A DNA stretch of 64,000 nt from Zygnema circumcarinatum SAG 698-1b (Eukaryota; Plantae; Zygnematophyceae). The notes beneath the pieces are model-generated. The model saw only the letters and a program-made list of their open reading frames with translations, made no database searches and was not told the origin of the DNA. This document shows positions 1 to 55,913 of the stretch, in pieces; the first letter of the stretch is position 1, and each line of letters begins with the position of its first letter. The stretch spans positions 3,844,001 to 3,908,000 of the forward strand of contig CM074808.1 of the NCBI GenBank assembly GCA_037447605.1, in the 5' to 3' direction. The translations under genes were made by a program, and so were the position numbers.

Positions 1-447
1 GTGCCCGTTGAACCAATTTCCTCATTTTGAGCATAAAGCTGGCTGTCCGGATAGCTTGTACGGAACCAATCATTCTACGGTACCGTACGGTTCGAATGTG
101 GCCGATCCCCAGAAGCGACAAGGTCGAAAGAGCCGTTGGCGCCGCCTTCCACGCTCACTCCCTCTCCCTCTCTCCCTCCACTCGCTCCCTCCCTCCCCCC
201 ACTCTCTCCCTCCCTCCCTCCCTCCCTCTCCCGCTTTCCCTCCTCCCCACTCTTTCCCTCCCTCCCTTTCTTTCTCTCCCTCTCTCCCTCCCTCTCCCCA
301 CACTCTCCCTCCCCACCTCTCTTTCTCTCCCTCGCTCCCTCCCTCTCCCCCTTTCCCTATCCACCCCTTCAGCGAATTTTCCTCTCCCTCTCCCTCCCAC
401 TCTCTCGCCCTCCAAAGCCGCCAGGTATAGCTCCCTCCCTCACAAAC

Positions 448-3400
448 ATGAGGCCCCGCGCAGACCTTAAGCCGGCCATGGCTGCCACGTGGCGCTACCA
501 TGGCTCGGATTCCATGCGCTTCCTCCTCCTTGTGCTCCTCCTCTTCGTAGCGGAGCAGCCATGGCGGGCCCATGGCTGCCCTCCTCCTCCTCGCTGGACC
601 CTCCTCGCCGCCTTCACCGCAAAGGCGCGCACCGTTTTAAGGAGGGCGGGGGAGCCAAAGGAGAGGGTGTCGCTGCGATCTGGAAAATATTTACACAAGG
701 TGCGCCTTGGTCTATTTTTTTTTATGTATAATTTTAAGATGATGATTCCATTTTTTTAGTTTTTGGTTTTTACGATTTCGAGAGTGAACGATACCTTTAA
801 TGTTAATGAAATGTTGAACAACTTGGGTTCGAATTTGGTTTAAAAATGATGACTTGCTGGAGAGGAAGAGGAAGAATGGCAACTGAGCGAGACCCAATGA
901 TTGAAACGTTTCAATTTTTAATTTTAGATTTAAATTTTGCAGAGGTGGTCTCCCCCTCCCCTTCACGCCTCAAAAAGAAAAAGGAACGGGAATCAGCAAA
1001 AAAAGAGATTTGATGGCTCAAAATAGATCAACACATTCACATCAAGAGAATGTTCAACAACTTAGAGCTATGAAGCATCCTTGGAATCATCGGCAATGGT
1101 TGGCCATACCAATGGTTGGAATCATTGACAATGGTTGGCCATAAGGTGGAGAGAGTGGGAGAGAGAGGAGAGAGCGAGAAAGTACAGACATTAAACAGGA
1201 AGAATATATAACATTTGAGCTTCTTATTCTCTCCCCCTCCCTTTGATTTCGCCCTAAATTCTTCTCGTTGTAGGTTGAGCATTGCAAGAAGGGCGGGCCT
1301 TTGAATTGTTGTAGCGATCGATCCGATGGACTTTATCGAGACCCCTTCACATGGCCTCCCTGCAGGTACAGTATTCCCCCTCGCTAAATTCATCAAGGCA
1401 ACGGTTGGACTGTGTGGAGAGAGAGGGGGAGAGAAGGAAGAGGGAAAGAGAAAGGGAGAGAGAGGGAGAGGGAGAGGGGGAGGGAAAGGGAGAGGGAGAG
1501 GGAGAGAGAGAGAGAGGGGGAGGGAGAGAGAGGGAGAGGGGGAGGAAGAGGGAAAGCGAGAGGGGGAGGAAGAGGGAAAGAGAGAGGGAGAGAGAGTGGG
1601 AGAGGGAGAGGGAGAGAGGGAGAGAGAGGGAGAGCGAGAGGAAGAGGGAGAGAGAGGGAGAGGGAGAGAGAGAGGGAGGGAGAGAGAGTGGGAGAGGGAG
1701 AGGGTGAGAGAAATGGAGAGGGAGAGAGAGGGAGAGGTAGAAGGAGAGGGAGAGGGAGGGGGAGAGAGAGAGGGGGGGAAGGACGAGGGAGAGAGACGGA
1801 GCGGGAGAGGGAGAGAGATGGAGAGGTCGAGGGAGAGGGAGACCTACCTCTTTTAGAAAAACACAAGAGAGATGCACTACAAGAAGACACAGCTAAGTGC
1901 CTAAGACTTAGCGTATCAGATAATGCTCAAGAGGATGTTGAAGGGGACTTGAACTTGCGTTCATGTGTTTGAAGTGAAGTTATTTGTTTTTTGCAGCGCA
2001 TTCTGTAAGTGTTCGGGAGGATGCTTAGTAAATTTCACTGTCTGTAGTGAAGGCCTCCTCTTTAGCACTCTCCGGGGGGGCTGTGACTCGCCCCACCTCT
2101 CCTCCTGCTCCCATCGGGAAGAGGACGCACTGAATAATAGGCATAGCAATAATGCCGAAGAGGAGGGCGGGGGAGAGAGAGTGGGAGGGGTGAGAGAGGA
2201 GGAGGAGGAAGCGGAGGAGGAAGAGGAGGAAGAGGATGAGGAGGAGGAGGAGGAGGAGGAGGAGGAGGAGGAGGAGGAGGGGGACACTTATTTAAGCTTC
2301 AGAGAAGTGGGGTCCGAACATGATGTCAGCATTCTCAAGAAAAAAAAACGTCCCCATAGCATATGGAAACCGTTGGTAAGTGGTAGAACGCATTCCCTGA
2401 ATGCAAGGCGGCATTCTCCTGATGGAGGGAGACACGGAAGGGCAAGACAACTCTCTGAAGACGAAGAAGTAGACTTCGTACGGGGAGGTAAACGTCCCCC
2501 AGGTGAAGGAAATCGTCCCCCAGGTGTAGGGAAACATCCCCCAGGAGAAGGAAAACGTCCCCCAGGTGTAGGAAAACGTCCCCCAGGTGTAGGAAAGCGT
2601 CCCCCAGGTGTAGGAAAGCGTCCCCCGGGTGAAGGAAAACGTCCCTCCGGTGAAGGAAAACGTCCCCCCGGTGAAGGAAAACGTCCCCCAGGTGAAGGAA
2701 AGCGTCCTCCTGGTGAAGGAAAACATCCCCCAGGGAATGGTAACGTACCTCCTTGCGAGGGTAGGAGGCCACCTGAACAAGATGGACGACCTCCCGGTGT
2801 CGGAGAAAACATCTCACCCTGTCTCCAAGAGTCCCCTGAACCCCCTAAACCCTCTGCTCCTCCCCCCCCCCCTCCCCCTTCACTCTCTCCTTCCCTTCAT
2901 TCTCCCCCTCGCTCTCCCCCTCTCCCCCTTTCTCCCACTTCCCCACCACCATTTTGTAGTTTATCATCTTCGGGGGGGCCGTGTCCCTCTCCCTCCCTCC
3001 CTCCGTCATTCTTGAGCCCCCCTCGACCTCCTCCATCTCCGCCGGCATTCTTTCTCTATAATTCATGGAACCCGGCCACCTTGCCAAAGCCGCCACAAGT
3101 GGTTAGTTTCAACTCTTAGCTCGTCTGTTTAAGCGTTGAAGCAGGGATGTGGGAGTGGGAGTTAAATGTGGCTGTGTTGTAAGCAAATTTGTCTTTTTTT
3201 GTGTAATTTAATGGTTGCCGCGGTTTACTTCCAATTCTTTAGGGTATCCATAGGACCTTATATCTGGGCTCTGATGGGAGGTGGGCTTCAGATTAGCGAT
3301 GGCTGCTGCCAAGGGAGGAAGAACGGTATTTTTCAGAACTTTCTGGCCAAGCCGCCTTGCAGGTGATTATTACATAACAAAACGACACCGATTCGAACGT

Positions 3401-6400
3401 TCAATAATTTTAATCTAAGTTTAATCTTGGAACTTAATGTAACAAAAAACTAAAAGACTTACTGAATTTAAGTTCTAATCTCGTCAAGTTTCGGGTTCAT
3501 GTAATGCAGGCAATTTTGTGAATGTGATGAGAACGGAAAGCTTGTGAGTGGCGGTCTGTGTCCGGAGGGGCTCCTTTGGAGTCCGGAGTTGCAGACCTGC
3601 GACAACGCGGACTTTGTTACCTGCTTGAATACAAATTCGAGCCTTCTTCCCCCCAACACCCCATATTATTCCCCTCCGGCGAATCCCCCCCCTCCTCCTC
3701 TGGTAATGGGTTTGAAGCCCAAAAATCTAAAATCATCTCTACCTTTGAACTAGATTCAACTACCACAATGATGATATAAAAATTGACCAAAAATGGTTTA
3801 CTTTTATTTGTATATATATATATATATATATCTTTTTTGTAATTTATTGATAAAGTACGTTTGTACGCTGTCACATGCAGCCCAACAAAGGAGTTTTGAA
3901 TTCAGGCTACGTCGACCGCTACGCTCTCATAGAAGCGTGCACTCCTTCGTGCACTCCGTTAGAGATGGTGAAGTTCAACAGCAGATTCCGGTATCAAACC
4001 GTTCCCAGGAGTGAAATCCGTTCAACTGTAAGCTGGCGAAACTATAGCAACGAGGTTCGATACCAAGGAACTTGCGGTAAGTAAAAATAACAAGCCTTCG
4101 GAAAAGTTTGAGTTTGTTTCGTTTCTTTCTTTTTGGCGCCTACTATTATTTAAAAAAAAAAAAATTGTTCAAAAAGGTTGTTTTTCGCCTCATTGCAGAT
4201 GGATGCTGGGCTTTCAGCGTAGTTGAAGCAGTTGAAATATCGATCAACATAAACGACCACGTGTTGGGGGCCCCTCTTTCCGTACAGCAACTTTTAGACT
4301 GTCTGCCTCAGCATGGAGACAGTTGTGAAGGAGGGGACCCAGTAGACGCTTTGGAGTATGTTGCGAATTTGGGAGGTCTAAATTATGATTTCAATTACCC
4401 TCAGCTTTCAGGAGAAGTTCGAAATGGCACTTGTCAGACGATTCCGGTGAGACCTAAAATTTATAAATTCTAAAAAAAAAACTCAAAAATTAAGAATCCA
4501 GAAAAAGTCGAGCTTTTTCCTCTAATGTATAACGGCTTTGTCTACATTGACAGAGTAAGGTATTCTTTCTGGCTGTTCTATGCGCAGCTGTTATGCAACT
4601 GAACTGAAGGGATATGTTCTATGTGTCTGCAGTTACAGAACGAGAGGAGTCTAGTAGTTGGATGGGAGCAAATTCCGAACAACAATGCAACCGCGCTAAT
4701 GCAAGTGGTCAACAGTCAGCCTGCAATCATTGCAATATGCACATGTGATTCGTTCCTCGAGTACAGACAAGTACGACAAAAACGAGGGAGGAGGGAGAGG
4801 GAGAGAGTTGGGGGAGCGAGTGGCGGAAGGAAGGGAGAGATAAACTTCCTTTCTTTAATTTCCTGTTCGGAAGTTCAGGTCGGCAGTGATTCCCATACTG
4901 CTTTCTCCCAATATTGATAAATTTCCGCATTTTGTAAATTGAACTTCATTGATTTGTTTGACAGGGCATTTTCACAGATCCGGATGGACAATGCAATGGT
5001 CTTCCGGACCACAACCTGGTGGTGATCGGCTACGGAACAGAGAACGGAGTTCCATATTGGCTCGCAAAAAATTCGTGGGGCATAGATTGGGGTGAAGATG
5101 GGTACATGCGCATTTATCGAAATATGACCGGCTCCGGAATCGCCAATATGTACTTAATCGCTCCTGTATATCCAGTCATCAATGCATACCCTACAGGGAA
5201 ACAGAGCGCCCAAAGGAGAGACCTTCTCGGTAAATTCAACGCAAACTTTCCTTGTAAATGCCGATCACAAGTTGCATGGGGTTAGGTTACTAACATAGGT
5301 TTTCACAGCAACATTTTTCACTTCAAGTCTTAGAAACTGAATCTCATTCTCCTTGTTGCGTTCTGAGCTTTGAACTTGGCAAAGTCGAATTGGGTTTTGT
5401 TACCTTATTTGTAAGAGGTGAAGTTATGTGAATTGAAGGATTCCTTTTCCCTTCCCCAGTTCCTTCAGGAAATCCAACGCAATCGCCAACTCCATTTCCA
5501 GCCCGTCTTCCAACACCACTCTCTCCCATCCTCCTCCATACCATCCCTTCCCTACCTCCATTCGCCCATGGCTCCTCTCCCTCCCCTTTCGCGCCTGGCC
5601 CATCTCCCTATCCTTCACCTTTCGCCCCCTCTCCCTCTATTTCCGACTTTGGCCTCTCTCCCTCTCTATTCGCCACCGGATCTTCTCCCACTGCCCCCTC
5701 TACCTCGCCCACTCCCGTCCCTGCTCCCTTTCCTTCGCTCCCCATCCCCTGTCCCTCCCCTTCCTCTCCCTCCCCTTCCTCTCCCTCCCCTTCCTCTCCC
5801 TCCCCTTCCTCTCCCCCACCCTCTCTCTCCTGTCCCTCCCCTTCCTCTCCCTCCCCTTCCTCTCCCTCCCCTTCCTCTCCCTCCCCTTCCTCTCCCCCAC
5901 CCTCTCTCTCCCCTTTCGCCCCTGGCCCCTGTCCCTATCCTCTCCGACCAGGACCTCCTCACTCTGCCCCCTCTATCATTCCGACTCCCGGCCCTGCTCC
6001 CTCTCCTTCGTTCTCCATCGCCTCTCGCTCCCCTTCCTCGCCCACCCCCTCCCCCTCTCCTCTCGCCCCTGGACCTTCTCCCTCTGCCCCCTCCATCTCT
6101 CCCACTCCCGGCCCTCCTCCCTATCCTTCCCTCCCAATCCCCTCGCTCTCTCCTTCCTCTCCCGCCCCCTCTCCCTCTCCTTTTGCCCCAGGCCCCTCTC
6201 CCACTACTCTCGCCACAAAACCGTCTCCCTCGGCCTCCTCTACCTCTCCCACTTCCGGCCCTGTCGCCTTTCCTTCGTTCCCCATCCCCTCTCCCTCTCC
6301 TTCCGCCCCTGCCTCATCTCCCACACTTTTCGCCCCTGGACCTTCTCCCTCTGCCAACTCAACCTCTCCTACTCCCGTCCCTGCACCCTTTCCTTTGTTC

Positions 6401-9400
6401 CCTATACCCCCTCCCTCTCCTTTCGCCCCTGGCCCCACTCCCACTGCTCTCGCTCCTGAACCCTCTCCGTCTGCCCCGTCTATCTCTCCCTCTCCCGGCC
6501 CTACTCCCTTTCCTTCGTTCCCCATCCCATCGCCCTCTCCTTCCTCTCCCGCCCCCTCTCCCACTCCTCTCGCCCCTGGACCTCCTCCCTCTGCCCCCTC
6601 TACCTCTCCCACTCCCGGCCCTACTCCCTTTCCTTCATTCCCCATCCCCTCTTCCTCGCCTTCCTCTCCCACTCCCTCTCCCACTCCTCTCGCCCCTGGA
6701 CCTTCTCCCTCTGCCCCCTCTACCTCTCCCACTCCCGGCCCTACTCCCTTTCCTTCATTCCCCATCCCCTCTCCCTCTCCTTCCTCTCCCGCCCCCTCTC
6801 CCACTCCTCTCGCCCCTGGACCTCCTCTCGCCCCTGGACCTTCTCCCTCTGCCCCCTCTACCTCTCCCACTCCCGGCCCTACTCCCTTTCCTTCATTCCC
6901 CATCCCCTCTCCCTCTCCTTCCTCTCTCGCCCCCTCTCCCTCTCCTTCCTCTCCCGCTCCCTCTCCCACTCCTCTCGCCCCTGGACCTTCTCCCTCTGCC
7001 CCCTCTACCTCTCCCACTCCCGGCCCTACTCCCTTTCCTTCATTCCCCATCCCCTCTCCCTCTCCTTCCTCTCCCGCCCCGCCCTCTCTCCCACTCCTTT
7101 CGCTCCTGGACCTTCTCCCTTTGCTCCCTCTACCTCTCCCTCTCCCGGCCCTACTCCCTTTCCTTCATTCCCCATCCCCTTCCTCTCCTTCCCGCCCCCT
7201 CTCCCTCTCCTCTCGCCCCTGGACCTTCTCCCTCTGCCCCCTCTCCCTCTCCCACTCCCGGCCCTACTCCCTTTCCTTCCTTCCCAATCCCCTCTCCCTC
7301 TCCTTCCTCTCCCGCCCCCTCTCCCACTCCTCTCGCCCCTGGACCTTCTCCCTTTGCTCCCTCTACCTCTCCCTCTCCCGGCCCTACCCCCTTTCCTTCC
7401 TTCCCCATGCCCTCTCCCTCTCCTTCATCTCCCACCCCCTCTCCCTCTCCTTTCGCCCCTGGCTCGTCTCCCTCTCCTCTCGCCCCTGGACCTTCTCCCT
7501 CTGCCCCCTCTCCCTCTCCCACTCCCGGCCCTACTCCCTTTCCTTCCTTCCCAATCCCCTCTCCCTCTCCTTCCTCTCCCGCCCCCTCTCCCACTCCTCT
7601 CGCCCCTGGACCTTCTCCCTCTGCCCCCTCTCCCTCTCCCACTCCCGGCCCTACTCCCTTTCCTTCCTTCCCCATCCCCTCTCCCTCTCCTTCCTCTCCC
7701 GCCCCCTCTCCCACTCCTTTCGCTCCTGGACCTTCTCCCTTTGCTCCCTCTCCCTCTCCCTCTCCCGGCCCTACTCCCTTTCCTTCCTTCCCCATCCCCT
7801 CTCCTTCTCCTTCCTCTCCCGCCCCCTCTCCCACTCCTCTCGCCCCTGGACCTTCTCCCTCTGCCCCCTCTCCCTCTCCCACTCCCGGCCCTACTCCCTT
7901 TCCTTCCTTCCCAATCCCCTCTCCCTTTCCTTCCTTCCCAATCCCCTCTCCCTCTCCTTCCTCTTCCGCCCCCTCTCCCTCTCCCTCTCCCTTCCTCTCC
8001 CCCCTCTCCCTCTCCTTCCTCTCCCGCCCCCTCTCCCACTCCTCTCGCTCCTGGACCTTCTCCCTCTGCCCCCTCTCCCTCTCCCACTCCCGGCCCTACT
8101 CCCTTTCCTTCCTTCCCCATCCCCTCTCCTTCTCCTTCCTCTCCCGCCCCCTCTCCCACTCCTCTCGCTCCTGGACCTTCTCCCTCTGCCCCCTCTCCCT
8201 CTCCCACTCCCGGCCCTACTCCCTTTCCTTCCTTCCCAATCCCCTCTCCCTCTCCTTCCTCTCCCGCCCCCTCTCCCACTCCTCTCGCCCCTGGACCTTC
8301 TCCCTCTGCCCCCTCTCCCTCTCCCACTCCCGGCCCTACTCCCTTTCCTTCCTTCCCAATCCCCTCTCCCTCTCCTTCCTCTCCCGCCCCCTCTCCCACT
8401 CCTTTCGCTCCTGGACCTTCTCCCTTTGCTCCCTCTACCTCTCCCTCTCCCGGCCCTACTCCCTTTCCTTCCTTCCCCATCCCCTCTCCCTCTCCTTCCT
8501 TTCCCGCCCCCTCGCCCACTCCTCTCGCCCCTGGACCTTCTCCCTCTGCCCCCTCTCCCTCTCCCACTCCCGGCCCTACTCCCTTTCCTTCCTTCCCCAT
8601 CCCCTCTCCCTCTCCTTCCTCTCCCGCCCCCTCTCCCACTCCTTTCGCTCCTGGACCTTCTCCCTTTGCTCCCTCTACCTCTCCCTCTCCCGGCCCTACT
8701 CCCTTTCCTTCATTCCCCATCCCCTCTCCCTCTCCTTCCTCTCCCGCCCCCTCTCCCACTCCTCTCGCCCCTGGACCTTCTCCCTCTGCCCCCTCTCCCC
8801 CTCCCACTCCCGGCCCTACTCCCTTTCCTTCCCCCCCCCGCCCCTCTCCCTCTCCTTCCTCTCCCGCCCCCTCGCCCACTCCTCTCGCCCCTGGACCTTC
8901 TCCCTCTGCCCCCTCTCCCTCTCCCACTCCCGGCCCTACTCCCTTTCCTTCCTTCCCAATCCCCTCTCCCTCTCCTTCCTCTCCCGCCCCCTCTCCCACT
9001 CCTCTCGCCCCTGGACCTTCTCCCTCTGCCCCCACTACCTCTCCCACTCCCGGCCCTGCGCCCTTTCCTTCCTTCCCAATCCCCTCTCCCTCTCCTTCCT
9101 CTTCCGCCCCCTCTCCCTCTCCTTTCGCTCCAAGCCCTTCGCCCACTCTCCCCTCTTTCCCTCTCACTCCCGGCCTTGCTCCATTTCCCTCCTCGCCCAT
9201 TCTTTCTCCCCCTCTTTCCCCAGGGCTTCCAGTTCCCAATCGCCCCCCCTCCCTCCATCCCTCGCCTCCATTTTTCTTTCCTCCTGTATCCTCTCCTCCT
9301 CCACTCCTTCTTATTCCCCCACCTCCAAAGAGTCCTCCCACTCCTCCGGGTAAGCCACTTCCTTCGTTCTTTCTTCCTTCTTTCTTGCTTTAACCATTTA

Positions 9401-12400
9401 CCATCCATTTTTCTTTTGTCCTTTTAATTTGTTTGCCATATGTATTTTTTTTCAAATTTGTTAAAGACGTTCTATGTTGAATCTTGCAGCCACTGCTTGT
9501 GACGGCGGAATTCGCTTCAATGCATGTGGGGGTGGTGCCTGTATCCCCTACCCGAGTGATATTACCAAATACACGTGTCAGTGTCCTACTGGCTACACAA
9601 GTGTTCAAAATCAGGACGGAAATGAAGTGTGCACTCAAAGTAAGCTCATCCCTCCCTCTGTCATTCCTTTCCTTATTTTCAAAAGTACAAAACAAAATGA
9701 CCATCACATAACATCATAATTACATTAAAACCTATCAGAATGATTGCTTTTAGAAAACCCAGAAAACCCAGAAACTCAGAAAATCTAATTTTTTGAAATG
9801 TTGTATGTTTTTTTTACAGTTGATGTTTGCTCGGGATTGACATACAACCCTTGTGGAGTTGGCCTGTAAGGCCCTTTATCCCCTTCTTCTGAAAATTCTG
9901 AAAGAAGACGTGTAATTAGGGTGTTTGCTGTTCCGTTGGGTTTGGGGTTCAGGATTTTTGACGGTAGTTAGGGTTTCCAGGTCTTCAGAGAAGTCGATTG
10001 TCTCATGGTGTACGAGTATTCACTGTGAATTGACCGTGTTTGTTGAAAAGGAAATCTTTCTCTCTCTTTCTCTTCCTGCTGTCTCACTCTTTCCCTCTCG
10101 TCTTCCCTTCCCCCCCCACTTCCCGTCTCCCCTCTCCCCCACTCCCCTCCCCCCCTCTCCCCTATCCTCTCCCCCCCTCTCCCCTCTCCTCTCTCTCTCT
10201 CTACCTCTCTCTCTCCCCTCTCTCTCTTTCTCCCTCTCTCTCTCTTCCCTCTCTCTCTCTCCTTCTCCCCCTCTCATTTCTCTCCTTCTGTCCTCTCTCA
10301 CTTTCTCTCCCTCTCTCTCTCTCCCCCCCTCTCTCTCTGCAGATGCGCGAATGACGGAAAAGGGAACTATGAATGCGACTGCAGCGCCTTCAGTGGCTTC
10401 TCTGAAGGAACTCGAACGGACGGCTCGAAGACTTGCGTTCCAAGTAATCGCAACCGTCTAATCATAGCATATAATCTTTTTGCATCATTGCATTTTCCTT
10501 TTATCCACTCAAAAATATAAAGAAAGAAGAGAAGAAACCGCTGAAGATTTTGAAAAAAAAAAGTGACAAATACAGAGTTTATTTATTTATTTATTTTTCC
10601 TTTTGTCTCATGTTTATGTTTGGGCTGCAGCTGCGGCAACCTCCCTCTCCGCAGAAAACAACACTTACACCGTGCCGGACGGAAGCCTTACCTGCTCAGA
10701 AATCGCTAAAATCAACTTCTTGGATTTTGATGATCTCCTCTCCTTGAATCCAGTAAGGTGGACCTAGTCTGCAAAAAGGATCCACCTCGGATCAACCCCT
10801 TCCACTACTTACAGAAATTTTCATCCTTCATTGTCTTCTGGATTGCTCATTTTTGGTGCACAACAAGAGGGTGGTTAGGGTTATACTTCACGTGATTAAG
10901 CTCTGATTTCTCGATTTCTTTACTTATGAGTTGCTTTTCTTTTCTTTTTCTTTCTCAGTATCTCAGTCTATACTGCGGACTAGACAGACCAGAGGCAGAA
11001 GTTCCGGAAGGTACGGAGCTGGCAGTGGGTCCGGTTGTAAGGGACATTGCCTGCGGAGTAATATATAGCACAATTAAGGTACGAAATAACATTGACATAC
11101 AGTAGTAGATTTTTCTCTCTCTCTCTCTCTCTCACTCGCTTTCCCTCTCTCTTTGTAAGAAAAGTAAGTGCCATCTGTAAACTCGATGCAATTGCAATAA
11201 TGCAATGTTTCAGCAGAAATGCTTCAAGTTAATAGGGTATGTCCGACTTATAAATCATAAGTAGTGCTGAAGAGAAAACTTCCGTAGATCTGATACGAAA
11301 ACGAATACTCCGGTGACATAGCGATCCGAAAGGAGTCCTCCGTATAAAAATCTCCAGTACTACTGAAGGAAAAACTTCCGCTTGGTTTTTGTTCAAGTCT
11401 GACATGCCCTAATATATTGTTAACGTTTTAATTGTGATTGCAGGGAGATACATGTAACAGTATAGTGAATCTGTTCAGCAGTCCTCCCAAAGCTCTCTCT
11501 TTGGATAAATTGGTCGCCGTCAATCCTCCCTCTACCCTAAACTGCCAAAATCCCGACGCCGATTTAGGGCCTAATTTGCCGGTGCGGTTGAACATTCCAT
11601 ATTTCAGCCCCTTGAAATTAAACGTTTGTGATTTAAAGTTCAGGGTTTGATGGATGAGAGGTGTCCGTTGAATGTTTGTCGTTCATGATTGAGCCATGGA
11701 ATGAATCTTGAAATTTTAGGGCTATGAGGGTGTTCAGGCTTCTCTCCCTTCCTCTTCTCTTACTCCCTCCACCATCCTTCTCCCCACCTTCTCCCCCTCT
11801 CCCTCCCTCCCCCTTCTCTCCCCTCTCTCCCTTTCCCTCCCCTCTCATTCACCCCTTCTCTCTCCTCCCCTCCCCTCCTCTCTCATTCCCCCCTTCTCTC
11901 TCCTCCCCTCCCCTCCCCCCCTCCATTCCCCTCTCTCTCCCTCCCTCTTCTCTCCCCCCTCCACTTCTCTTTCCCCCCCTCCCCTTTTCCTCCCCCCTCC
12001 CTCTCCCCCCCTCTCCCTCCCTCACTCTCTCTCTCTCTCTCTCTCCCTCTCCCTCTCTCACTCTGTCTCTCTCTGTCTCTCCCTGTGGCGGTCCCCGTGC
12101 AGGTGTGCGTGGAGCCGAGCCCGTACTACAAGAGCCAGCTGTGCGGGCAGTACTACGAGGTGCTCCCAGCGGACCGCGGCCGCGGCTGCGCCTTTCTGTA
12201 CGCGGGCCGCACCACGGCGCTCGAGTTCTTCGCGCTCAACCCCGGGATCAACTGCGACGCGCTCGTGCAGGGGGACCTGGTCGGCCGCCGCTCAACCCTA
12301 AACCCCAAACTCCTGCAACCTATCTTGATCTTAACTATTGAAAAATCTACAAATCTTGAAACCCTGCAGCACGAAAAGGAGGAGACTTGCTCTGTTCTGC

Positions 12401-12963
12401 CATGTAACGCCGTAAACAGAATGAAATCTATGCCTATCTATCTGCATCTTACGTCTTCCAAATTCGGAAAATTTCGAAACCTGGTCCCTAATTCAACCCT
12501 TACCCTCCTTCAACCCTTACCCTAATCCAACCCTGAACCCTAATCCAACCCTAAACCCTCCTTCAACCCTAACCCTAATCCAACCCTAACCCTAATCCAA
12601 CCCGAACCCTAATCCAACCCTAACCCAACCATCCTTTCCTTTCCTCCCTCACAGATCTGCACCTTGCCCTACAGCCCCCAAATATTCGGCGCCAACGGCT
12701 GCTCCCGCAACGCCTGCACGGACCCTAAGTATACGAAAAACCCTAAAAAAGCCACCCCCATCACCATCCGCGGCCCTGGCCAGAGCTGCCTGAAGGCCGC
12801 GTACTCCCCCGCCTTCCGCTGCAACCTCAACATCTTCACCTGCCTCAACCAGGGCCAGGTCTGCAACGCGCGGACGGAGCTGCTGGGCCGCGCGGTCTGC
12901 GCGCCCACGCAGAAGTACGTTCCCAAGGATAAAAAATTCGCCAACCAATGCAAGAAGAGGTAG
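448..12963 (+). CDS. Secreted multidomain protein A: SP - CBM14-like - acidic/PPGxGK repeats - CBM14-like - papain C1A protease - Pro/Ser stalk - EGF x2 - LysM x3-4 (multi-exon)
   Basis: Phase-compatible GT-AG exons: 448-699, 1274-1365, 1997-~3101, 3292-3362, 3510-3702, 3881-4076, 4199-4446, ~4639-4770, 4965-~5253, 5469-9349, 9490-9639, 9820-9865, 10343-10443, 10631-10752, 10959-11078, 11444-11581, 12103-12279, 12655-12963. Motifs: hydrophobic [13 protein letters not shown]; [36 protein letters not shown]; [33 protein letters not shown]; 6-Cys EGF units; YTV..LTCSEIA..LLSLNP. The first intron and the extreme 3-prime end are less certain, and the stalk exon carries a net frameshift in this assembly. 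Confidence 0.8.
2198..2282 (+). repeat. GAG microsatellite encoding a poly-Glu tract in gene A
   Basis: (gag)n run in frame within the 1997-3101 exon: [18 protein letters not shown]... Confidence 0.85.
2493..2805 (+). repeat. 21-bp coding tandem repeat, about 15 copies of the heptad (R/H)PPG(E/V)GK
   Basis: Unit cgtcccccaggtg(a/t)aggaaaa read directly; translation [28 protein letters not shown]... Confidence 0.9.
3881..5253 (+). other. Papain-like (C1A) catalytic domain of gene A, 4 exons
   Basis: SWR..RYQGTC|DGCWAFS (oxyanion Gln, catalytic Cys), [25 protein letters not shown] (His), [14 protein letters not shown] (Asn). Confidence 0.93.
5469..9349 (+). repeat. ~120-bp (40-aa) Pro/Ser/Thr/Ala tandem array, roughly 20+ copies plus degenerate flanks; extensin/AGP-like stalk exon of gene A
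   Basis: Unit [40 protein letters not shown]. Bounded by acceptor ccttcag| (5468) and donor g|gtaagc (9349). The register switches between reading frames near 7080, 7180 and 7990. Confidence 0.85.
12490..12630. repeat. Degenerate telomere-like repeat (CCCTAA/TCCAA mix) in the last intron of gene A
   Basis: Repeated ccctaatccaaccctaa / aaccct units. Confidence 0.7.
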
Positions 12964-14062: not shown

Positions 14063-17000
14063 ATGGCCGCCGCAGCGTCCTCCTCTCTTGTCGCCCCCAA
14101 CCTCCGCCACGCCCCGATCTCCAGCTCCAGACACGGCCCCAGGCCCCGCCATGGCCTGAAGCTCCAGGCCCACTCCCGCCTCCCCGGCCGCCATGGCGCG
14201 CAGCAGCAGCGCGCCCGCCATGGCACGGTCTGCGCCTCTCCCCCCGCGGAGGAGGTGGGCGTGCGGCAGGAGGCTCTCACACGTGCGGACCTCACGGCGT
14301 ACCTCGCCTCGGGCTGCAAGCCGAGGGAGAACTGGAGGTGGGGGCCGTACAGCTGTACGTCGGCTTTTAGGTTTCAGGGAAGGTGCTAGGGTTAGGGATT
14401 TTAGGGTTGGTGTGTAGGGGTTCAGGACTGACTGTCCTGGGGGGGGGGGGGGGGTTTGNNNNNNNNNNGGGGGGGGGGGGGGGGGTTTGCTTGTGCTGCT
14501 TCTTGAGCTCTCGCTCTCACTTTCTCTCCCTCTCTCTCTCTCTCTCTCCTCTCCGTCTCCCTCTGTGTCTGTCTCAACAAGCTCACTCAACCTGTCTTAT
14601 TTTTTTCGCTTGCAATATCTCTCCCTCTCTCTCTCTCTGTCCCTTCCTTTTCTTGTTCTCTTTCTGCTGCTTTCTTTATTCTTGCCTCTCTCTCTTTCTA
14701 CTCCTCCTTCTCTCCCTCTCCTCCTTCTCTCCCTCTCCTCCTTCTCTCCTTCCTTTGGTCTCCTTTACCTTCCTCGTTTGGTATCGTCTCCCTCTCTCCC
14801 CTCTCCTCCATCTCTTCTCCTTCTCTCCTCCTCTCCTTCTGTTCTCCCTCTCTCTGCTTCTCTCTTCCTCTCTTTTTCTTTCTTTTTTAAATATGGCCAT
14901 GTTATTTCTGAACAACAGTTCCATACAAGTTTAGAGAATTCTAAAGGCCCTGAAAAACTTGAACTTTTTGAACCAGTCAACATTAAAAAGCAAGCCTCCT
15001 TCCTTTCCTGCAACTGCAGCACGCGAAGGTTTCTCGAATTAATTTATTAAATTCTTTATGACTATTGTATTATAAATCTGCAGATTTTTCTGATTTTTTT
15101 CCGGAAAGACGAATGGTAGAGTCTGCTCAACTTGATTTTATAGTTTTAACTTTATCTTTTACTGACAGCCAACGGAGGAAGTGGGCGTTTCCATGCGGTT
15201 TACTGTAATAGAGATAAATAAATGAAAGTAGAATTTATATATTTGCTAAACCATGTTAGATCAAGGAAAACCCATGTTTTACAAAAAATGTGGGGTTGCA
15301 GGATCGGAACCGAGCACGAAAAGTTTGGATACAACCTTGACACTCTCGAGCCCTTGAAATATGAACAGGTAAATTGCCATCGCTACTCTCTCTCTCTCTC
15401 CCTTAGTCTCTCCCTCTCCCTCCCTCAGAACTGTCGGAGAGGGAGGGTAGGGATGTGGCTCTCTTTTTCTCCCCACTGGACCCCCTTGTGTCTCTTTCTT
15501 CCCCCCTCGATTTTCTTGTTCTGTGTCATGCATTTTTCTGGCTTGTTCCCCATCAAGGAGTTATGACACGTTTAATTTAATCAGGTTAGCTTAATTGTTG
15601 CTTTACATCTATTTCTTTGTTTTTCCTTTTCCGGAAATATGCAGATTTCACAGCTTTTGCACACGATTGCGGAACGCTTTGAATGGGACCGTGTTATGGA
15701 GGGAGACAACATCATTGGGCTAAAATTTGTGAGTCTCATCTATCACTCTGTGCCCCCCTCTCTCTCTCTCTCTGCTCCCTGTTCTTCCTGTCTCCCATCA
15801 TCCTCCAATCCCTTCTCCCCCCCTACCCCTCGCCATGCCTCCTCTCGTCCTCCTCCCTACTGCTCCGTCGTCCTCTGCCCCTGCCCCTTTCCCTCTCCCG
15901 TATTCTTCCTCTCTCCCTCCCTTCTACTTTCCCTGTCCATCTCCCTCTTTCACTCTCTACCACTCTCTGTCTCGTTCGCTCTGTCGTCTTATTGCATCAA
16001 ACCACAATTACATGATTTCTTTTGTACTTTTCATTTTCATTTTGCAATTTGGAGACCTGTTAAGTATTTTCAGGAGTTAGGGTTCCCAGGGGAGTTTCTT
16101 CTCCAGATTCTCTTGCCGTTCATTTAGAAAGTAGAAAGGAGCGGACAGGTAGGCCTGCAGTGGAAAGACATAGAATTGACCAATCTTCAGTCGAGTCTCC
16201 TTATCTCTATCCCTTTCTCTCCTCCCCTCTTCCTCTCTTCAACTATCTAACCTTTCACTCACCTAACACCCCTCCATTCCCTTCTCACTCATCATAGTTT
16301 TTCTTTGTCCAAGTCTGCCTTCCAAATCTGCAATCCCTTAACCACTCTCCTCCCTCTTCCTCCCCCACTCTTTCCCTCCCTCCCTCTCCCCTTCTCCCCT
16401 CTCTCCTCTTCTCCCCCTCCCTCCCGTCCTCCCTTTCCCTCCTCCCCCCTTATATTTTCTCCCTCACTCTCCAACCCCCCCCCTTCTCTTCCACTCCCCC
16501 TCCTTTTCTCCCTCCCCCTCCCCTCCACTCCCTCCCTCCCTCTCCCTCCTCCCCCTCTTTCCTCTCCTCTCCATCCCACTCCCCTCCTCCCCCCTCCTTC
16601 CCCCTCTCCCCCCCCCCTCTCTACCCCTCCCCTCTTCCCCCCTCTCTCCTCCCTCCCCTCTCCCCTCCCTCCCTGCCTACCCCTCCCCTCTTCCCCCCTC
16701 TCTCCTCCCTCCCCCTTCCCTCCCCCCTCTCTCCTCTTCTATCCTCTCCTCTTCCCATTCTCCTCCTCCTTCCTTCCTACTCCCCGCCCCTCTCCCTCCC
16801 TCCCCCCACTCCCTCCCTCCCTCCCTCCCTCCCTCCCTTAGGACGGGCAAAACGTCTCCCTCGAGCCCGGAGGGCAGTTCGAGCTGAGCGGCGCCCCACT
16901 TCAGACGGTCCATCAGACGTGTGCGGAAGTGAACAGCCATCTCTACCAGGTCAAGGCGGTGGCGGAGGAGATGAAAATAGGGTTTCTTGGTTTAGGGTTT

Positions 17001-18728
17001 AACCCCCTTCAAGCGCTCCATGAGGTCCCCATCATGCCCAAGGGGCGCTACGCCATCATGCGGAATTACATGCCCAAAGTGGGAACGCTCGGACTCGACA
17101 TGATGTTTAGAACATGCACAGTTCAGGTGAAAATATGAATGAGCCTGAAATATGCAGGATGACTTTGTATGTAATGAGCCTAAAAGGATTTGAAAATTCT
17201 AGAAAATTTGAAGGGTTTTGTCCGGTCGGTGGTTAGGAAGTTTCTTGGATGTTTAGGGTTTCAGAGTTTCAGAGGACGCTTTTGTGCTACATGTTTGATT
17301 TGTTGAAGTCATGCTTCCACTTTTTAGGCACAACGTAGGCTCTCGTCATTCCTTAACTCAGTCGTGAAATCAACTGTATCCCCTCTCCCTCGCCCGCTTC
17401 CTCTCCCTCTTCTATCTCTTTTTTTCGCCCTCTCCTTCTCTCCTTTCCCTCTCCCCTCTCCCCTCGCCTCTCTCCCCTCTCCCCCCCCCCCTCCCTACCC
17501 CTACCCCCACCCCTCACCCCCTTCCTCTCCCTCTCCCTCTTTNNNNNNNNNNCCTCACCCCCTTCCTCTCCCTCTCTCTCCTCCCCTCTCTCTCTCCCCC
17601 CCCCTCTCCCCCCCAGGTGAACCTCGACTTCGAGTCGGAGCAGGACATGGTCGACAAGTTCCGTGCGAGTCTCGCCCTGCAGCCTCTCGCAACGGCTCTG
17701 TTCGCGAGCTCGCCCTTCACGGAGGGGCGGCCCAACGGCTACTTGAGCTACCGGAGCCATATTTGGGAGGACACCGACAATGCGAGAACTGGGGACCTTC
17801 CCTTTGTTTTTCAGCCGGGCTTTGGGTTCGAGGCTTATGTGGACTATGCGCTGAACGTGCCCATGTACTTTGTGTATCGGAACAAAAGGTATATAGACGC
17901 CACGGGGCTCTCTTTTCGTGACTTTATGGAGGGGAGGCTGGCAGTGCTGCCGGGAGAGAGAGCCACTCTCATGGACTGGGAGAATCATCTCACCACAATC
18001 TTCCCGGAGGTGAGGGTCGGCCGACTTTTTTTTTTTTTTTTTTTTTTAGTGAAGGTTTGTTAGTTAGTTAGGTTAGTGTTAGTTGGGTTAGTGAGTCAAA
18101 GTTTATGACAAGAAACTGAGGAACCCCACATCTGAAAGTCTCGTAATAACGGCAAGATTTTGGAATCCCAACACACCAAATCTACAGAAGCCGGAATACC
18201 AAAAACCAGAAAGGCCGAGAAGCCGAGAACGTTGAAACTTTAAACTAGCTAATATTTTATTGTTTTTTTTTTTCAACTTTTTAATAGGGTTTTCCCTTCC
18301 TTTGTCTGTTACAGGTGCGGTTAAAGCGATATATGGAGATGAGGGGGGCGGATGGGGGTCCCTGGAGGAGGCTATGTGCTCTCCCTGCCTTTTGGGTGGG
18401 GCTGTTATATGACCAAACATCGTTACAGGGTTGCCTGGAACTGATTTCTGACTGGACGGACAGGGAACGGGCGATGCTCCGTAAACGCGTGCCAAAGGAA
18501 GGGCTGAAAACTCCGTTCCGTGATGGGCAACTGAAACATGTAGCGCAGGATGTGTTCAAATTGGCTAAGGAAGGGCTGCAGAGGAGGGGATATAAGGAGG
18601 CGTTTTTTTTGAATGACCTTCAACTCACAGTGGAGACGGGAGAGACTCCCGCAGAGAGGCTTTTGGAGCTTTATCGGACCAAGTGGGGAGAGAAAATGGA
18701 GCCCCTTTATAGGGAAATGTCGTACTGA
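14063..18728 (+). CDS. GSH1: Glutamate-cysteine ligase (gamma-glutamylcysteine synthetase), plant type with putative plastid transit peptide, ~505 aa
   Basis: Exons 14063-14337, 15302-15368, 15645-15728, 16842-17126, 17617-18009, 18315-18728 (1518 nt, in frame). Plant GCL motifs [74 protein letters not shown]. The N-terminus is Ser/Ala/Arg-rich. Confidence 0.97.
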
Positions 18729-25714: not shown

Positions 25715-28700
25715 ATGGGGAGACGTAGAGGGTGGCGGCACGGCTTTCGGTTTTGTTTTATTCTCACTTTGATGCTCCAACTGTTCCATGTTCACGCGCC
25801 GCCCCCAAATGAATCTCAAAGTGAGGTTCCATGTCTCCTTTCCGTTGATGTTTTCATTATGAATCTTCGAACGGCAGGAGCACTTAATTTCACAGTTTTG
25901 AAGTGTTGGGAGAGAGGAGAGAGAGCGGAGGAGAGGAGGGAGTGAGGAGAGATCTGGAAGAAGGGAGGGTAGAGAAAAGAGGAGAGGGAGGGAGAGAGTG
26001 AGGGTGGGGGAAATACCAGGAGAGAGGGCGAGAGAGGAAGGGAGGGTCGGACGGAAGGAGAGCGAAAACGACATTTTTAGAACTCTGATGGGTAAAAAAT
26101 GGCAGAAGGCCGAGGTACTAGACAAGCGGAGTGGCTTCGTGGGAAACATATTTAAAAAAAAAAAAAGGATCTTCGGATGTAAGAATCCGGATGCACGGGA
26201 ATGTATTACGTTTTTTCCAGATTAATAATTTATTTATTGTTGATGTGCTTATTTTCCCGCGTTCGGGCAGGGCAAATTTTGGACCTTTTAGCGGCGGCGT
26301 GGCAGGGCGCGGACCTGGCCGGGTGGGGGGGGGCGCTCGACTGCTCCGATTGGGAGGGCCTGCAGTGCGACGAGGAGGGGAACGTGCTGCAGCTGTGAGA
26401 GGGGGAGGGAGAGGGGACGGAGGGANNNNNNNNNNGGGAGAGATGGAGGGATGGCGGGAGAGGGGGAGGGAAGGTGGAGGGAAGAGGGTTGGAAGAGAGG
26501 GAGGGGAAAGGAAGAGAGGGAGGGAGGGAGGGAGAGAGAGAGGGAAGGTGGAGGGAGAGAGGGAGGGGGAGGCAGCGAGGGAGGGGGGGAGGGAGAGATG
26601 GAGGAGAGCGGGAGGGCAGATGGTTGAGAGGGAAGGGGGGAGGGGGGGAGGGAGGACGAGATGGGAGGGAGTGATCAATGGTGGTGGGGAGAGGAAGGGT
26701 GTGGGGGAGGGAGAGAATGAAGGGGGAGGGAGAGAGGGAGGTGGGTTGGGAGGGTGGGGAGGAGGGACAGCGGAGGGCTGGAGTAGGCGGGAGGAGGGGA
26801 GGGAGGGAGGGAGGGAGGGAGGGAGGGAGGGAGAAGGAATGGGATGGGGGGAAGGAGGGAGGGATGCAGGGAGCAGGCAGGCAGGCTGGTGATGACGATG
26901 GATAGGGGGTGGAGAGAATGGGCGGCGGGAGGGCAGGAAGAGGCGGAGGGCGAGGAAACGGGAGGTGGGGGAAGGGCACGGGAGAGGAAGATGGAGAGGG
27001 AGAGAGAGGGAGAGGGAGAGGGAGAGGAGAGGGAGAGGGAGAGGGAGAGGGACAGGGAGAGGGAGAGGGAGAGGGAGAGGGAGAGGGAGAGGGAGGGAAA
27101 GACATGAACGTGACCGTGAGACAGCGGAAAGGTCGGTCGGCTGACGCGTGGCAGTGGGAGGCTCTGCAGAGACCTGTACGGCGACTCTCTGATTGGTCCG
27201 ATTCCGCCCATTTTGGGGTCCCTCGAGCATCTGGAAGTGCTGTAAGCCCACCACCCACTGTGCAAGCAAAATCTCTCTCTCTCTCACTCTCTGTCTCTCT
27301 CTCTTTCTTTCGCGCACTCTCTCTCTGTGTCTTAGTCTCTCTCTCACTCTCTCTCTCCGCCTTTTCTCTCTTTCCGTGTCTTTCACTCTCTCTGCCGTTT
27401 TCTCTCTCCCACTCTCTTTCGCTCACTCTTTTCCCTCGTCTTTGTCTCTCGCTCTGATTTCTAACTTTTCTGTTTCGTTTTTTTTTATTTTCCTCGTTTC
27501 AGGAGACTCGAATCGGCTTCTTTGACTGGGGAAATTCCGAAAGAAATTACACAATTGAATAATTTAAGAAAATTGTGAGTGCCGGGAAAACCCTAACCTT
27601 TTGTCTTTTTCCTGAATGCCCTAAATTTGTAACTTTTCACCGAACCCTACTTTTCTTTCAGCAGTTGTTTCAGCATGATGCCAAGAAAAGAGTCGCATTT
27701 TTTTTCTACTTACATTTCACATGGTTTTTTTTTTTTGGCCTTTGTATTAACGTGGTTTGATTCTCTTTTTTTTTTTCCTTTTTTCCTTCTCTTGAGCAGA
27801 ACTTTGAGCGGAAACGACCTCTATGGGAGCATTCCGGACGGGCTCGGACGCAACCAATCGCTCGTCCTCATGTAAATTTCGATCTTCCAAACCCAAACCC
27901 AAACCCTAAACCCTAAACCCTAGACCCCAGACCCTAGACCCTAGACCCTAAACCCTAAACCCCTAAATCCCTAAACCCTAGACCTTAAACCCTAAACCCA
28001 AACCCTTAACCCTAAACCCTAAACCCTAGACCCTAAACCCTAAACCCCTACATCCCTAAACCCTAGACCCTAAACCCTAAACCCCTACATCCCTAAACCC
28101 TAAACCCAAACGCTAAACTGTAGACCCAAAAACCCTAAACCCAAAACCCAAATCCTACACCGTAGGCCCTAAAACCCTCCCCACCCAATTCCTCAACCCT
28201 ACACCCTTAAACCCTGAACCCAAACCCTAAACCCTTGACCCCAAAACCCTAAACTAAAACCCTAAACCCAAGCCTTAAACCCTAGACCCTAAAACCTTAA
28301 ACCCAAACCCTAAACCATAAAATCCTAAATCCTTAAACCTTAAACCCTAAACTTTAAAATCTTAAACTCTAAACCCCTAAAACCCTAACCCCTAAACCCT
28401 AACCCCTAAACCCTAAGCCTTAAACCCTAGACCCTAAATCCCTACGACGTAAAGCCCAATTTTGAACCCTAAACCCTGAAAATCCTAAACTCTAAAACCT
28501 CAATCCCTAAAAACTGAACCCTAGTCACAACCATAAGAACCCTTAAAATCCTAACCCCCATTTTTTTTTTTTGGGTGGGGGGGCAGAGATTTGAGCTTCA
28601 ACATTCTCTCAGGGAGCATTCCGGACAGTCTTGGAGACGCGTTGGAGCTGGAATTTCTGTGCGATCCAAACCCTAAAAAACCCTAAACTCTGCAAACCCT

Positions 28701-39382: not shown

Positions 39383-39922
39383 TGGGGGTGAAGGGTGAAG
39401 GGTTTTGCAGGTTGGGGTGGGGATGGAGTTCAGAGAATCGTGACAACGTCACGTCTGCAGAATGCTCACGCCGGCAGACGTCACGTTGTCGAGAATTCTC
39501 CGATTACCAAAATGTCATGTTGTCGATGTACCGTGTTTTTGTAGTCTGTTGGATGTCTGTTGTTTATCCTGGCGTTCCATGTTCAGTTATATGTCTTTAG
39601 TTTTACGCTGAATGTATGTCCAATGTTCCATGTCCCGTGTTCCTTTGGGTCTCCATGTGTGGTTGTTCAACAAATTCCCAAGGCAAGGTGGAAATCACGA
39701 GGTGGAGGGTGGAATCTGGATCCAGTTGATGATCCATATCAACATCAGGAATGCATCCACTCGTTTTCCCCGCAAATTTGCCCGTGTGGAAATCGAGAAT
39801 CCACGCTTTTGTTGATCTGCACCTGCGTCAGATTCCAACGTCCCTGACGATCTCCAAAATAGATTTTGACATTTGGCGCGCTCTGTGATAGAAACTATCA
39901 GAAAAAAAGCAAAATAAAATTT

Positions 39923-45300: not shown

Positions 45301-45801
45301 CAAACAGGGGTTTGACATTGTTCTATGTGAGGAGGGCGGGGGAGGGAGGGAGAGAGAGAGAGAGAGGGTTCTAGCGATTTTTTGTTCAAGATTAGCGAAG
45401 GAAGCACCTTGCCTGCTATACGTGTAGAAGGCATGACGATGTTTCCATGCGTTAGTTGCAGGTTTTGCTGGAAGTAGATCTTCTTGAACTGAGTTATACA
45501 AGTGGAAAACCGTGCTATGTGTTGTTTTCTGTCGTATTTCCTTGATTTTATCAGATTTTGAGTTTTTGATTTCCATGTTTTTGTTTTCCGCAGGCAAACG
45601 GAGGTGTTTTGACTACTGGCTATTACGCACGGAATGCGTTTGATTGTGATAATCAAACGGACTGTCCGTACTTGCCCTTCAGTTACACCAAACGGAACGA
45701 ATTTATGCGATTCACGAGCGTGACCCCACAGGCCTTTGTTGATTGGAGGAACCCTGACATCATGACACCTGTCAAACTGCAACAGGCGTGCCGTGAGTCG
45801 G

Positions 45802-45855
<54 letters not shown>

Positions 45856-48408: not shown

Positions 48409-48442
<34 letters not shown>

Positions 48443-49451: not shown

Positions 49452-49499
<48 letters not shown>

Positions 49500-49510
49500 T
49501 TCTCTCTTTC

Positions 49511-49569
<59 letters not shown>

Positions 49570-55868: not shown

Positions 55869-55913
55869 AAGCGAGAGAGAGAGGTGTCCTAACTCCTTTC
55901 CGATTCACCCCAC

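Follow-up and report, generated by a model that had tools for sequence, protein, structure and literature searches.

The window analysed here, a stretch of 64,000 nucleotides of Zygnema circumcarinatum SAG 698-1b, contains gene A, an 18-exon model on the + strand (448-12963), and its paralogue gene B (43425-51162), which has the module and exon order of gene A and is 40-57% identical to it per exon. The spliced model of gene A is 6,887 nt long (2 mod 3); each of the 17 introns begins with GT and ends with AG, and the intron phases agree as far as the stalk. From the N-terminus, the modules are a signal peptide, two CBM14 modules, a papain-type (C1A) protease domain, a Ser/Pro stalk, two EGF units and three to four LysMs. 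Every module named by the initial annotation was thus found, including the catalytic Gln, Cys, His and Asn of the protease, with three of the LysMs clear and the fourth weak. Its proposal that the protein lacks a membrane anchor held as well: a hydrophobic C-terminus was looked for in the tail, and none is present.

The RNA evidence for gene A consists of cDNA-like contigs from four runs. The 5' exons (448-4770) rest on phase-consistent GT-AG sites, on gene B and on words shared with the runs, in which 0.64-0.68 of the words sampled from 3270-5240 occur. Moreover, a related transcript, L002 (ORF P0004), is 52% identical to gene A and colinear with it over 371 residues, and its tail aligns without a frameshift. 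The exons are as follows, with the evidence for each.

448..699, + strand: exon 1, with two ATGs, at 448 and 514, the second leading into a signal-peptide-like stretch; the phase-0 GT donor of exon 1 fits the next exon
1274..1365, + strand: CBM14 module 1, N-terminal half; AG/GT sites and, like module 2, an intron in phase 2 behind the second Cys
1997..2375, + strand: CBM14 module 1, C-terminal half, and acidic Glu-rich linker; Pfam CBM_14, 24.5 bits
3292..3362, + strand: CBM14 module 2, N-terminal half; sequence, phase and a tblastn match to gene B (43425-43493)
3510..3702, + strand: CBM14 module 2, C-terminal half, and Pro-rich linker; Pfam CBM_14, 28.7 bits
3881..4076, + strand: two-Cys segment in the place of I29, then the start of mature C1A with the oxyanion Gln (YQGTC); sequence
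4199..4446, + strand: C1A exon with the catalytic Cys (DGCWAFS), equivalent to Cys25 of dionain-1; Pfam Peptidase_C1, 51.8 bits
4633..4770, + strand: C1A middle exon; 53% identity to gene B 46519-46647, in phase
4965..5229, + strand: C1A exon with His and Asn-Ser-Trp (AKNSWG), ending in phase 1; Pfam, 69.5 bits, and spliced contigs in three runs
5460..9349, + strand: stalk exon, about 30 copies of a 120-nt (40-residue) unit; GT..AG joints 5229/5460 and 9349/9490
9490..9639, + strand: EGF1; Pfam EGF (PF00008), 24.0 bits against a cut-off of 21.5, and splice joints
9820..9865, + strand: 46-nt exon with the first two Cys of EGF2; joint 9639/9820 in four of four runs
10343..10443, + strand: rest of EGF2; contig pieces
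10631..10752, + strand: LysM1, first part; joint 10443/10631, hhalign 95% against a LysM profile
10959..11078, + strand: end of LysM1, linker and start of LysM2; predicted sites in phase, colinear with P0004
11444..11581, + strand: LysM2; hhalign 94%, donor picked by colinearity with P0004
12103..12279, + strand: LysM3; hhalign 96%, library matches
12655..12963, + strand: Cys-rich LysM4-like module, basic tail and TAG stop (12961-12963); colinear with P0004

Modules of the head and the tail

The stretch behind ATG 514 is the strongest hydrophobic window in the N-terminal part of gene A. The C-terminal halves of both CBM14 modules score above the Pfam cut-off of 22.1 bits (PF01607), and 89 of the 100 ESM Atlas clusters nearest to exon 3510..3702 are CBM_14 families. 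The N-terminal halves lie on exons of their own, both modules being split at one codon phase, and in tblastn the first of these exons (1274..1365) weakly matches gene B and module 2. Once spliced, each module has the six canonical Cys and two extra ones. An alternative donor in exon 1997..2375, at 2189, leaves the phase unchanged.

For the protease, two exons exceed the Peptidase_C1 cut-off of 20.7 bits (PF00112), and the second of them aligns to residues 150-216 of actinidin, with further matches to ficin and triticain. The catalytic set is complete in the spliced model (Gln19, Cys25, His159 and Asn175 in papain numbering), and judged from these residues the protease is apparently active. The equivalent of papain Cys200 appears by eye to be Ser (motif GSGIAN). 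About 45 residues precede the mature C1A start; an I29 propeptide was not found there by Pfam at E values up to 1 in the exons from the signal peptide to the catalytic Cys, in which CBM_14 is the sole family detected.

In the tail, the six-Cys pattern of EGF2 appears only once the 46-nt exon is spliced in, and it is conserved in P0004. The acceptor behind this exon was placed at 10343 because of one unassigned contig base, which restores the frame. The initial annotation had named four Pfam families to be looked for: CBM_14, Peptidase_C1 and EGF exceed their cut-offs, but the LysM model remains below its own on single gene A exons. LysMs were scored by hhalign probability against a profile built from 15 canonical LysM domains. 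The LysM3 exon matches 53 library proteins, all but three of which carry Pfam LysM, and the closest library and Atlas matches of the gene A LysMs are LysM proteins, including families with LYK/NFP-type LysM Pfam models. The fourth, LysM4-like module is a weak match (hhalign 40%, E 3e-4, 40 columns), with its Cys positions kept. An AlphaFold2 model of the homologous tail P0004, built on an alignment of 5 rows, reaches a pLDDT of only 36.

One transcription unit with a frame broken as assembled

The protease, stalk and EGF-LysM exons of gene A form one transcription unit, not two genes, because splicing connects the stalk exon both with the protease upstream and with the EGF-LysM part downstream. 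Spliced contigs link the protease to the stalk (4965-5229 to 5460), and the stalk by way of EGF1, the 46-nt exon and EGF2 to LysM1 (9349 to 9490-9639, 9820-9865, 10343-10443 and 10631-10752), with GT..AG at the joints and at similar depths. Unspliced RNA is present in the runs as well, with introns retained at 4900-4964 and 9350-9489.

In its Ser/Pro register the stalk consists of 42% Pro, 25% Ser, 7% Ala and 7% Thr, with 204 SP, 82 AP and 65 TP pairs and only 4 SPPP. Being rich in Pro, Ser, Ala and Thr, with non-contiguous SP, AP and TP pairs, it falls within the arabinogalactan type of hydroxyproline-rich glycoproteins (HRGPs), the hydroxylation and glycosylation being putative. A first guess had been that the tract is an intron or an intergenic repeat, given its open frames and the lack of such a tract in gene B; this was ruled out by the splice joints. 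The tract is CT-rich and lacks A and G, and for that reason alone all three frames are open. Such sequence is nearly devoid of stop codons, and frame shifts therefore leave the stalk untruncated. For annotation in general, this means that a long "ORF" in a CT-rich repeat exon neither proves coding nor reveals frameshifts, and that such an exon has to be judged by its splice joints and its length modulo three.

The initial annotation had the modules joined by spliced exons. This is borne out for the transcript, which joins protease, stalk and EGF-LysM part, but the reading frame from the protease into the tail is broken as assembled. The stalk exon measures 3,890 nt (2 mod 3); its repeat unit is a multiple of three, and the repeat register slips at about 7080 (+5 nt), 7185 (-7 nt) and 7970 (-35 nt). 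Translation comes into the stalk in frame 2 and has to exit it in frame 1; the first 1.6 kb and the last 1.4 kb of the stalk read Ser/Pro in exactly these frames, respectively. Translated colinearly from the protease frame, gene A runs out of frame into a TGA (9838-9840) within the 46-nt exon, ahead of most of EGF2 and all LysMs; translation of the spliced model gave no uninterrupted frame from start to stop.

An intron that would restore the frame was sought within the stalk and rejected: after the frame-1 stop at 6457, GT occurs only at 6469, 6478, 6517 and 7466, later AG only at position 9133 or beyond, and one contig that is continuous over 9073-9348 speaks against the use of these late AG sites. 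Single-base homopolymer errors were dismissed as the cause of the slips, the sizes of which do not fit; as a speculation, each slip could combine a length variant divisible by three with the gain or loss of one base. Apparent joints within the stalk (e.g., 6973 to 7124 and 7260 to 7428) match over only 20-23 letters at their shorter end and lack GT..AG, and were discarded as repeat artefacts. Contig pieces inside the stalk have zero mismatches to the genome, and the contigs of the four runs include none that spans the whole stalk or its repetitive middle.

The frame break is most likely an assembly error or an allele-specific defect of the tandem array rather than a real truncation, because both ends of the stalk fit the register of their neighbours and a related transcript has an in-frame stalk: in L002, the Ser/Pro stalk is in frame with EGF1. 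A search for protein homologues with P0004 in a restricted length window returned only P0004 itself.

The proposed product and competing readings

On balance, we favour the reading that gene A is transcribed as, and meant to encode, a fused secreted CBM14-C1A-stalk-EGF-LysM mosaic glycoprotein, the stalk of which is interrupted by a defect of the assembly or the allele. The spliced mRNA would be about 6.9 kb long and the intended product a secreted glycoprotein of about 2,300 residues without a membrane anchor. It would combine a C1A domain with the full catalytic set but without I29, a stalk of about 1,300 residues and three to four disulfide-bearing LysMs. CBM14 and LysM, as two kinds of binders of GlcNAc polymers, could anchor the protein to surfaces of chitin or peptidoglycan, for example on chytrids, fungi or bacteria, and the putatively glycosylated stalk might keep the head, i.e., the CBM14 modules and the protease, at a long distance from the EGF-LysM tail. 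Judging from the module families, it is a reasonable inference that the product docks on chitin or peptidoglycan and has a role in defence.

A real frame break is unlikely by comparison, but it is the likeliest of the alternatives. This copy of gene A would then make a protein of signal peptide, two CBM14 modules, C1A and stalk that ends at TGA 9838-9840, with the second half of the stalk read in Leu/Ser-rich registers, and the tail exons, transcribed and untranslated, would have been lost recently in one member of a tandem family. Three multi-base slips that leave the assembled length at 2 mod 3 are unlike the single-base errors typical of long reads, no canonical intron is at hand to correct the frame, the shifts do not truncate the almost stop-free stalk, and gene B could carry the function. 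The contigs also show no insertions or deletions relative to the genome, but their coverage of the slip sites themselves is not established. Against a real break, the EGF-LysM exons are undamaged: they contain 30 Cys, none having been lost, are free of stops, keep their splice sites and align to P0004 without frameshifts. In addition, the stalk reads Ser/Pro over its last 1.4 kb in precisely the frame that the EGF exon needs.

Alternatively, the stalk exon might be skipped in the functional product. Joining 5229 directly to 9490 would give a stalk-less CBM14-C1A-EGF-LysM protein, and this would be in frame, donor and acceptor both being in phase 1. Gene B is predicted to look like this: it shares the layout of gene A, with protease, EGF-EGF and LysMs including the putative fourth, its protease donor and EGF1 acceptor are likewise both in phase 1, and on the + strand a Ser/Pro stalk is absent between them, with stops in all + frames. 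However, a joint from 5229 to 9490 is not listed in any of the four runs, while both joints that include the stalk are, and we therefore regard skipping as very unlikely.

Exceedingly improbable is the separation into two genes, which the initial annotation had named as an outcome to be checked on transcripts, i.e., a CBM14-protease ending at about 5285 and a separate EGF-LysM gene with low-complexity intergenic or intronic DNA in between: an in-frame stop does follow at 5283-5285 when donor 5229 is ignored, and CT- and AG-rich tracts are common in introns of the gene A locus, but the joints 5229/5460 and 9349/9490 bound the tract as an exon on both sides, the tail exons offer no start codon followed by a signal peptide and therefore need the upstream part for secretion, and L002 has stalk and EGF in one frame.

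Related proteins and possible significance

LysM modules are sensors of chitin and peptidoglycan in plant immunity and symbiosis, and CBM14 is mainly an animal chitin-binding module. Chitin-binding repeats and a Pro-rich spacer are reported for the Volvox protease VcPap-11, which is said to be induced by wounding as well as by pheromone. According to the citing paper, the pheromone-induced C1A protease of this name (Amon et al., 1998, cited in PMC2474614) is one of many algal C1A proteinases that fall outside the cathepsin B, F, H and L groups. An architecture of Peptidase_C1 and LysM is on record for Chlamydomonas (PMC2728734), and the two families also occur together in a fungal protein. The designation of gene A as an unrecognised architecture was therefore too strong, but a literature search for CBM14, C1A, EGF and LysM in one protein found no paper. 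The CBM14-headed gene A is a new form within an uncharacterised algal LysM-C1A family.

The chlorophyte proteins with LysM and Peptidase_C1 are, like the gene A product, secreted algal papain-type proteases joined to LysM; compared by description only, they have no reported CBM14 or EGF. Gene A, unlike them, belongs to a streptophyte alga, and its LysMs are C-terminal, behind the 1,300-residue stalk. The best matches among solved structures for both catalytic exons are papain-like cysteine proteases (PLCPs) of land plants (actinidin, ficin, triticain and dionain), which have the same catalytic residues. These carry I29, and granulin is the known extension (RD21-type), whereas in gene A no I29 was detected and CBM14, EGF and LysM are present instead. 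Tandem LysMs with conserved Cys are shared with CEBiP/LYP proteins, LysM receptor kinases and fungal LysM effectors; compared to LysM ectodomain proteins, gene A is without kinase, transmembrane segment and GPI signal, and has two EGFs ahead of its LysMs. The CBM14 Cys pattern together with a long Ser/Thr/Pro-rich spacer recalls arthropod peritrophin/obstructor proteins and CBM14 mucins, but the arthropod proteins are animal matrix proteins without C1A, and the gene A modules have two extra Cys and a phase-2 intron. Finally, CAE6506220.1 (P0014) of Rhizoctonia solani resembles gene A in joining LysMs, here four of them, to Peptidase_C1 in one chain; this fungal protein differs in its reversed order (LysM, EF-hand, C1) and has no CBM14, EGF or stalk.

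That one secreted protease carries both CBM14 and LysM in an alga so close to land plants suggests a use of these modules in recognising microbial surfaces before receptor kinases took over that task. Gene A also supplies a defined protein for tests on the chytrids that parasitise desmids. The frame break in this copy limits the value of the find. A much wider conjecture, which we hold with little confidence, is that the algae nearest to land plants possess a large secreted family in which recognition modules (here CBM14 and LysM) are coupled to a propeptide-less papain, amounting to a kinase-free "bind and cut" surveillance of chitin and peptidoglycan that was later replaced or lost in land plants. 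If true, exchangeable heads and a phase-1 stalk cassette would be the way in which this family diversifies. The EGF-LysM tail occurs also without the protease, because in the ENA contig L004 it is found behind a different, repeated head that has no C1 motif.

Transcript support for the stalk exon

The Ser/Pro tract of gene A (448-12963, +), here called the stalk, lies between the protease exons and the first EGF exon (5460-9349), within an interval (5415-9424) that is open in every frame because it is 88% C+T. It was at first expected to be an intron, since the corresponding tract of the paralogue, gene B (43425-51162, +), contains stops and phase-1 sites fitting a direct splice; this was ruled out by spliced contig joints on both sides. 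Between 64 and 68% of sampled words of 3270-5240 are present in five same-organism runs, and contigs from four of these were aligned to 4900-10899. They show GT..AG joints and are thus cDNA-like:

5229|5460, +, protease to stalk, contigs from three runs
9349|9490, +, stalk to EGF1, contigs from two runs
9639|9820, +, contigs from four runs
10443|10631, +, contigs from four runs

One contig spans 4965-5228 and 5459-5738, and another 9073-9348, 9489-9639, 10344-10443 and 10631-10752. Mismatch-free pieces fall within the stalk (6064-6513, 7490-7639, 8254-8357, 8614-8742), the middle of which no single contig bridges, and contig depth differs little between the protease exon, both ends of the stalk and the EGF exons. 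The stalk begins at an acceptor and ends at a donor that are both in use, and no direct 5229 to 9490 joint is among those listed for the four runs; the tract is thus an exon, which places protease and EGF-LysM tail in one transcription unit. The alternative of two separate genes, which would have overturned the initial annotation, is refuted by the first two joints, which connect protease to stalk and stalk to EGF1.

Unspliced RNA also occurs in the runs, with 4900-4964 and 9350-9489 retained. One contig of a single run (X1) joins 5189 to 5403 (213 nt absent, no GT..AG ends, flanking intron sequence retained), which may reflect a deletion allele or an assembly artefact.

Domain composition of gene A

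The region is eukaryotic and intron-rich, with low-complexity tracts rich in CT or AG between short exons of ordinary composition. Pfam scans were run exon by exon (cut-offs: CBM_14, 22.1 bits; EGF, 21.5 bits); the tail exons from 10959 onwards were predicted from splice sites and phase.

Exons and domains of gene A
1274-1365, +, N-terminal half of CBM14-1, separate exon
1953-2150, +, CBM_14 (module 1), 24.5 bits
3292-3362, +, N-terminal half of CBM14-2, separate exon
3505-3705, +, CBM_14 (module 2), 28.7 bits
4198-4446, +, Peptidase_C1, 51.8 bits
4962-5282, +, Peptidase_C1, 69.5 bits
9465-9650, +, EGF1, 24.0 bits
9820-9865, +, 46-nt exon revealed by reads
10959-11078, 11444-11581, 12103-12279, 12655-12963, +, predicted tail exons

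Restricted to GT-AG introns, the model gives a stop-free N-terminal part of 611 residues: a signal-peptide-like segment (13 residues), CBM14-1 and CBM14-2, each with a linker behind it (Glu-rich and Pro-rich, respectively), a two-Cys segment of about 45 residues, and the C1A domain. Both N-terminal-half exons of the CBM14 modules end in phase 2 directly after the second Cys. The spliced C1A domain carries a 21-residue motif and AKNSWG; in alignments, its catalytic Cys matches Cys25 of dionain-1 and its last exon matches actinidin 150-216. Pfam detects no I29 propeptide at E up to 1. By eye, 4965-5229 has Ser at the papain Cys200 position (GSGIAN) with the usual partner Cys (GQCNG) present, whereas gene B has both Cys.

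In the tail, the acceptor after the 46-nt exon is 10343, set by one unassigned contig base, and the frame then holds. In the spliced tail, LysM1 comes after two EGFs with six Cys each; the sole LysM match of the single-exon scans (10624-10764) lies below the cut-off. The predicted exons were checked against P0004, a 388-residue ORF of a related transcript (L002) from contigs of other public runs: the 387-residue tail is 52% identical to it across 371 residues, with six gap positions. The LysM3 exon has 53 protein matches in a 1.84-billion-protein library, all but three with a Pfam LysM. Compared by hhalign with a profile built from 15 canonical disulfide-type LysMs, the four modules scored:

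LysM1, probability 95%
LysM2, probability 94%
LysM3, probability 96%
LysM4, probability 40% (E 3e-4, Cys positions kept)

No hydrophobic segment was found at the C-terminus, which is basic. The initial observation of two CBM14 modules, C1A, stalk, two EGFs and LysMs was largely right.

Reading frame of the stalk

The stalk consists of tandemly repeated units of 120 nt (40 residues). In its Ser/Pro register it contains 42% Pro and 25% Ser, and the many SP, AP and TP pairs, with SPPP almost absent, point to a stalk of arabinogalactan rather than extensin type. The assumption of a single reading frame fails in the present assembly: the complete model (6,887 nt) and, within it, the stalk exon (3,890 nt) are both 2 mod 3. 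Entry from the protease exon is in frame 2 and EGF1 needs exit in frame 1. The frame of the Ser/Pro register changes through three departures from the unit, one insertion (+5) and two deletions (-7 and -35):

5462 to ~7081, frame 2
~7084 to 7188, frame 1
~7200 to 7985, frame 3
~7990 to 9349, frame 1

The colinear ORF keeps frame 2, passes into Leu/Ser-rich registers over the downstream half of the stalk, misreads EGF1 and ends at TGA 9838-9840. A canonical frame-repairing intron within the stalk was considered and rejected: past the frame-1 stop at 6457 there are few GT sites and no AG before 9133. The contig unbroken from 9073 also counts against it.

Probably the protein is fused and the break reflects a defect of the assembly or of the allele. 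That the stalk is in frame in the actual gene is favoured by end registers that fit the neighbouring exons, a unit length divisible by three, flanking introns that are both phase 1, as in gene B, and the 93 Ser/Pro stalk residues that L002 carries in frame with its EGF1. That this copy is truly frame-broken seems rather unlikely, although the slips are multi-base and the contigs show no indel relative to the genome; none of them, however, is demonstrated to cross a slip site. The most economical mechanism, inferred at every functional step, is that the protein would dock on GlcNAc polymers and cut there.

Paralogue, neighbours and related architectures

Gene B has the exon order of gene A (two CBM14, C1A, two EGFs, LysMs; 38-57% identity per exon) without a Ser/Pro stalk. 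Its protease-EGF1 interval is 1.5 kb long and AG-rich, with every + frame stopped and an N gap at 48399-48408; the phase-1 donor 47156 and phase-1 acceptor 48668 are compatible with a direct splice. A counterpart of the LysM4 exon was not found in gene B by tblastn.

By eye, ORFs at 16842-18725 (+) resemble exons of a plant-type glutamate-cysteine ligase, and those at 26183-39400 (+) and 55900-59900 (-) combine kinase motifs (one of ten residues; GQLRHRNLV) with an LRR N-terminal cap, which suggests two putative receptor-like kinase genes on either side of gene B. Such plant-type genes count against contamination.

The architecture had been considered unrecognised, which is overstated: peptidase_C1+LysM is recorded in Chlamydomonas, such architectures having been lost in angiosperms (PMC2728734), and a Rhizoctonia solani protein among the library matches combines four LysMs, EF-hands and Peptidase_C1 in one chain. 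Our literature searches found no description of CBM14, cysteine protease and LysM together, nor of LysM-papain fusions in Closterium or Zygnematophyceae. A passage of PMC2474614, citing Amon et al. 1998, describes a C1A protease of Volvox that is induced by pheromone and falls outside the cathepsin B/F/H/L groups. Gene A belongs to an uncharacterised algal LysM-papain family, in which it represents a variant with a CBM14 head and a stalk.

An ENA metagenome contig (L004) has the EGF-EGF-LysM tail behind a different head, three to four copies of a ~170-residue repeat, each closed by an SPPPP linker (1-3400), in which Pfam finds no match; no C1 motif occurs in the contig. This arrangement shows the EGF-LysM tail to be a movable unit.

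A coding-like repeat, 'G-K-R/H-P-P-G-V/E-G', occurs at 2480-2800 (an intron of gene A, with long ORFs on both strands) and at 48200-48350 (the protease-EGF intron of gene B), and may be a dispersed repeat or mobile element.
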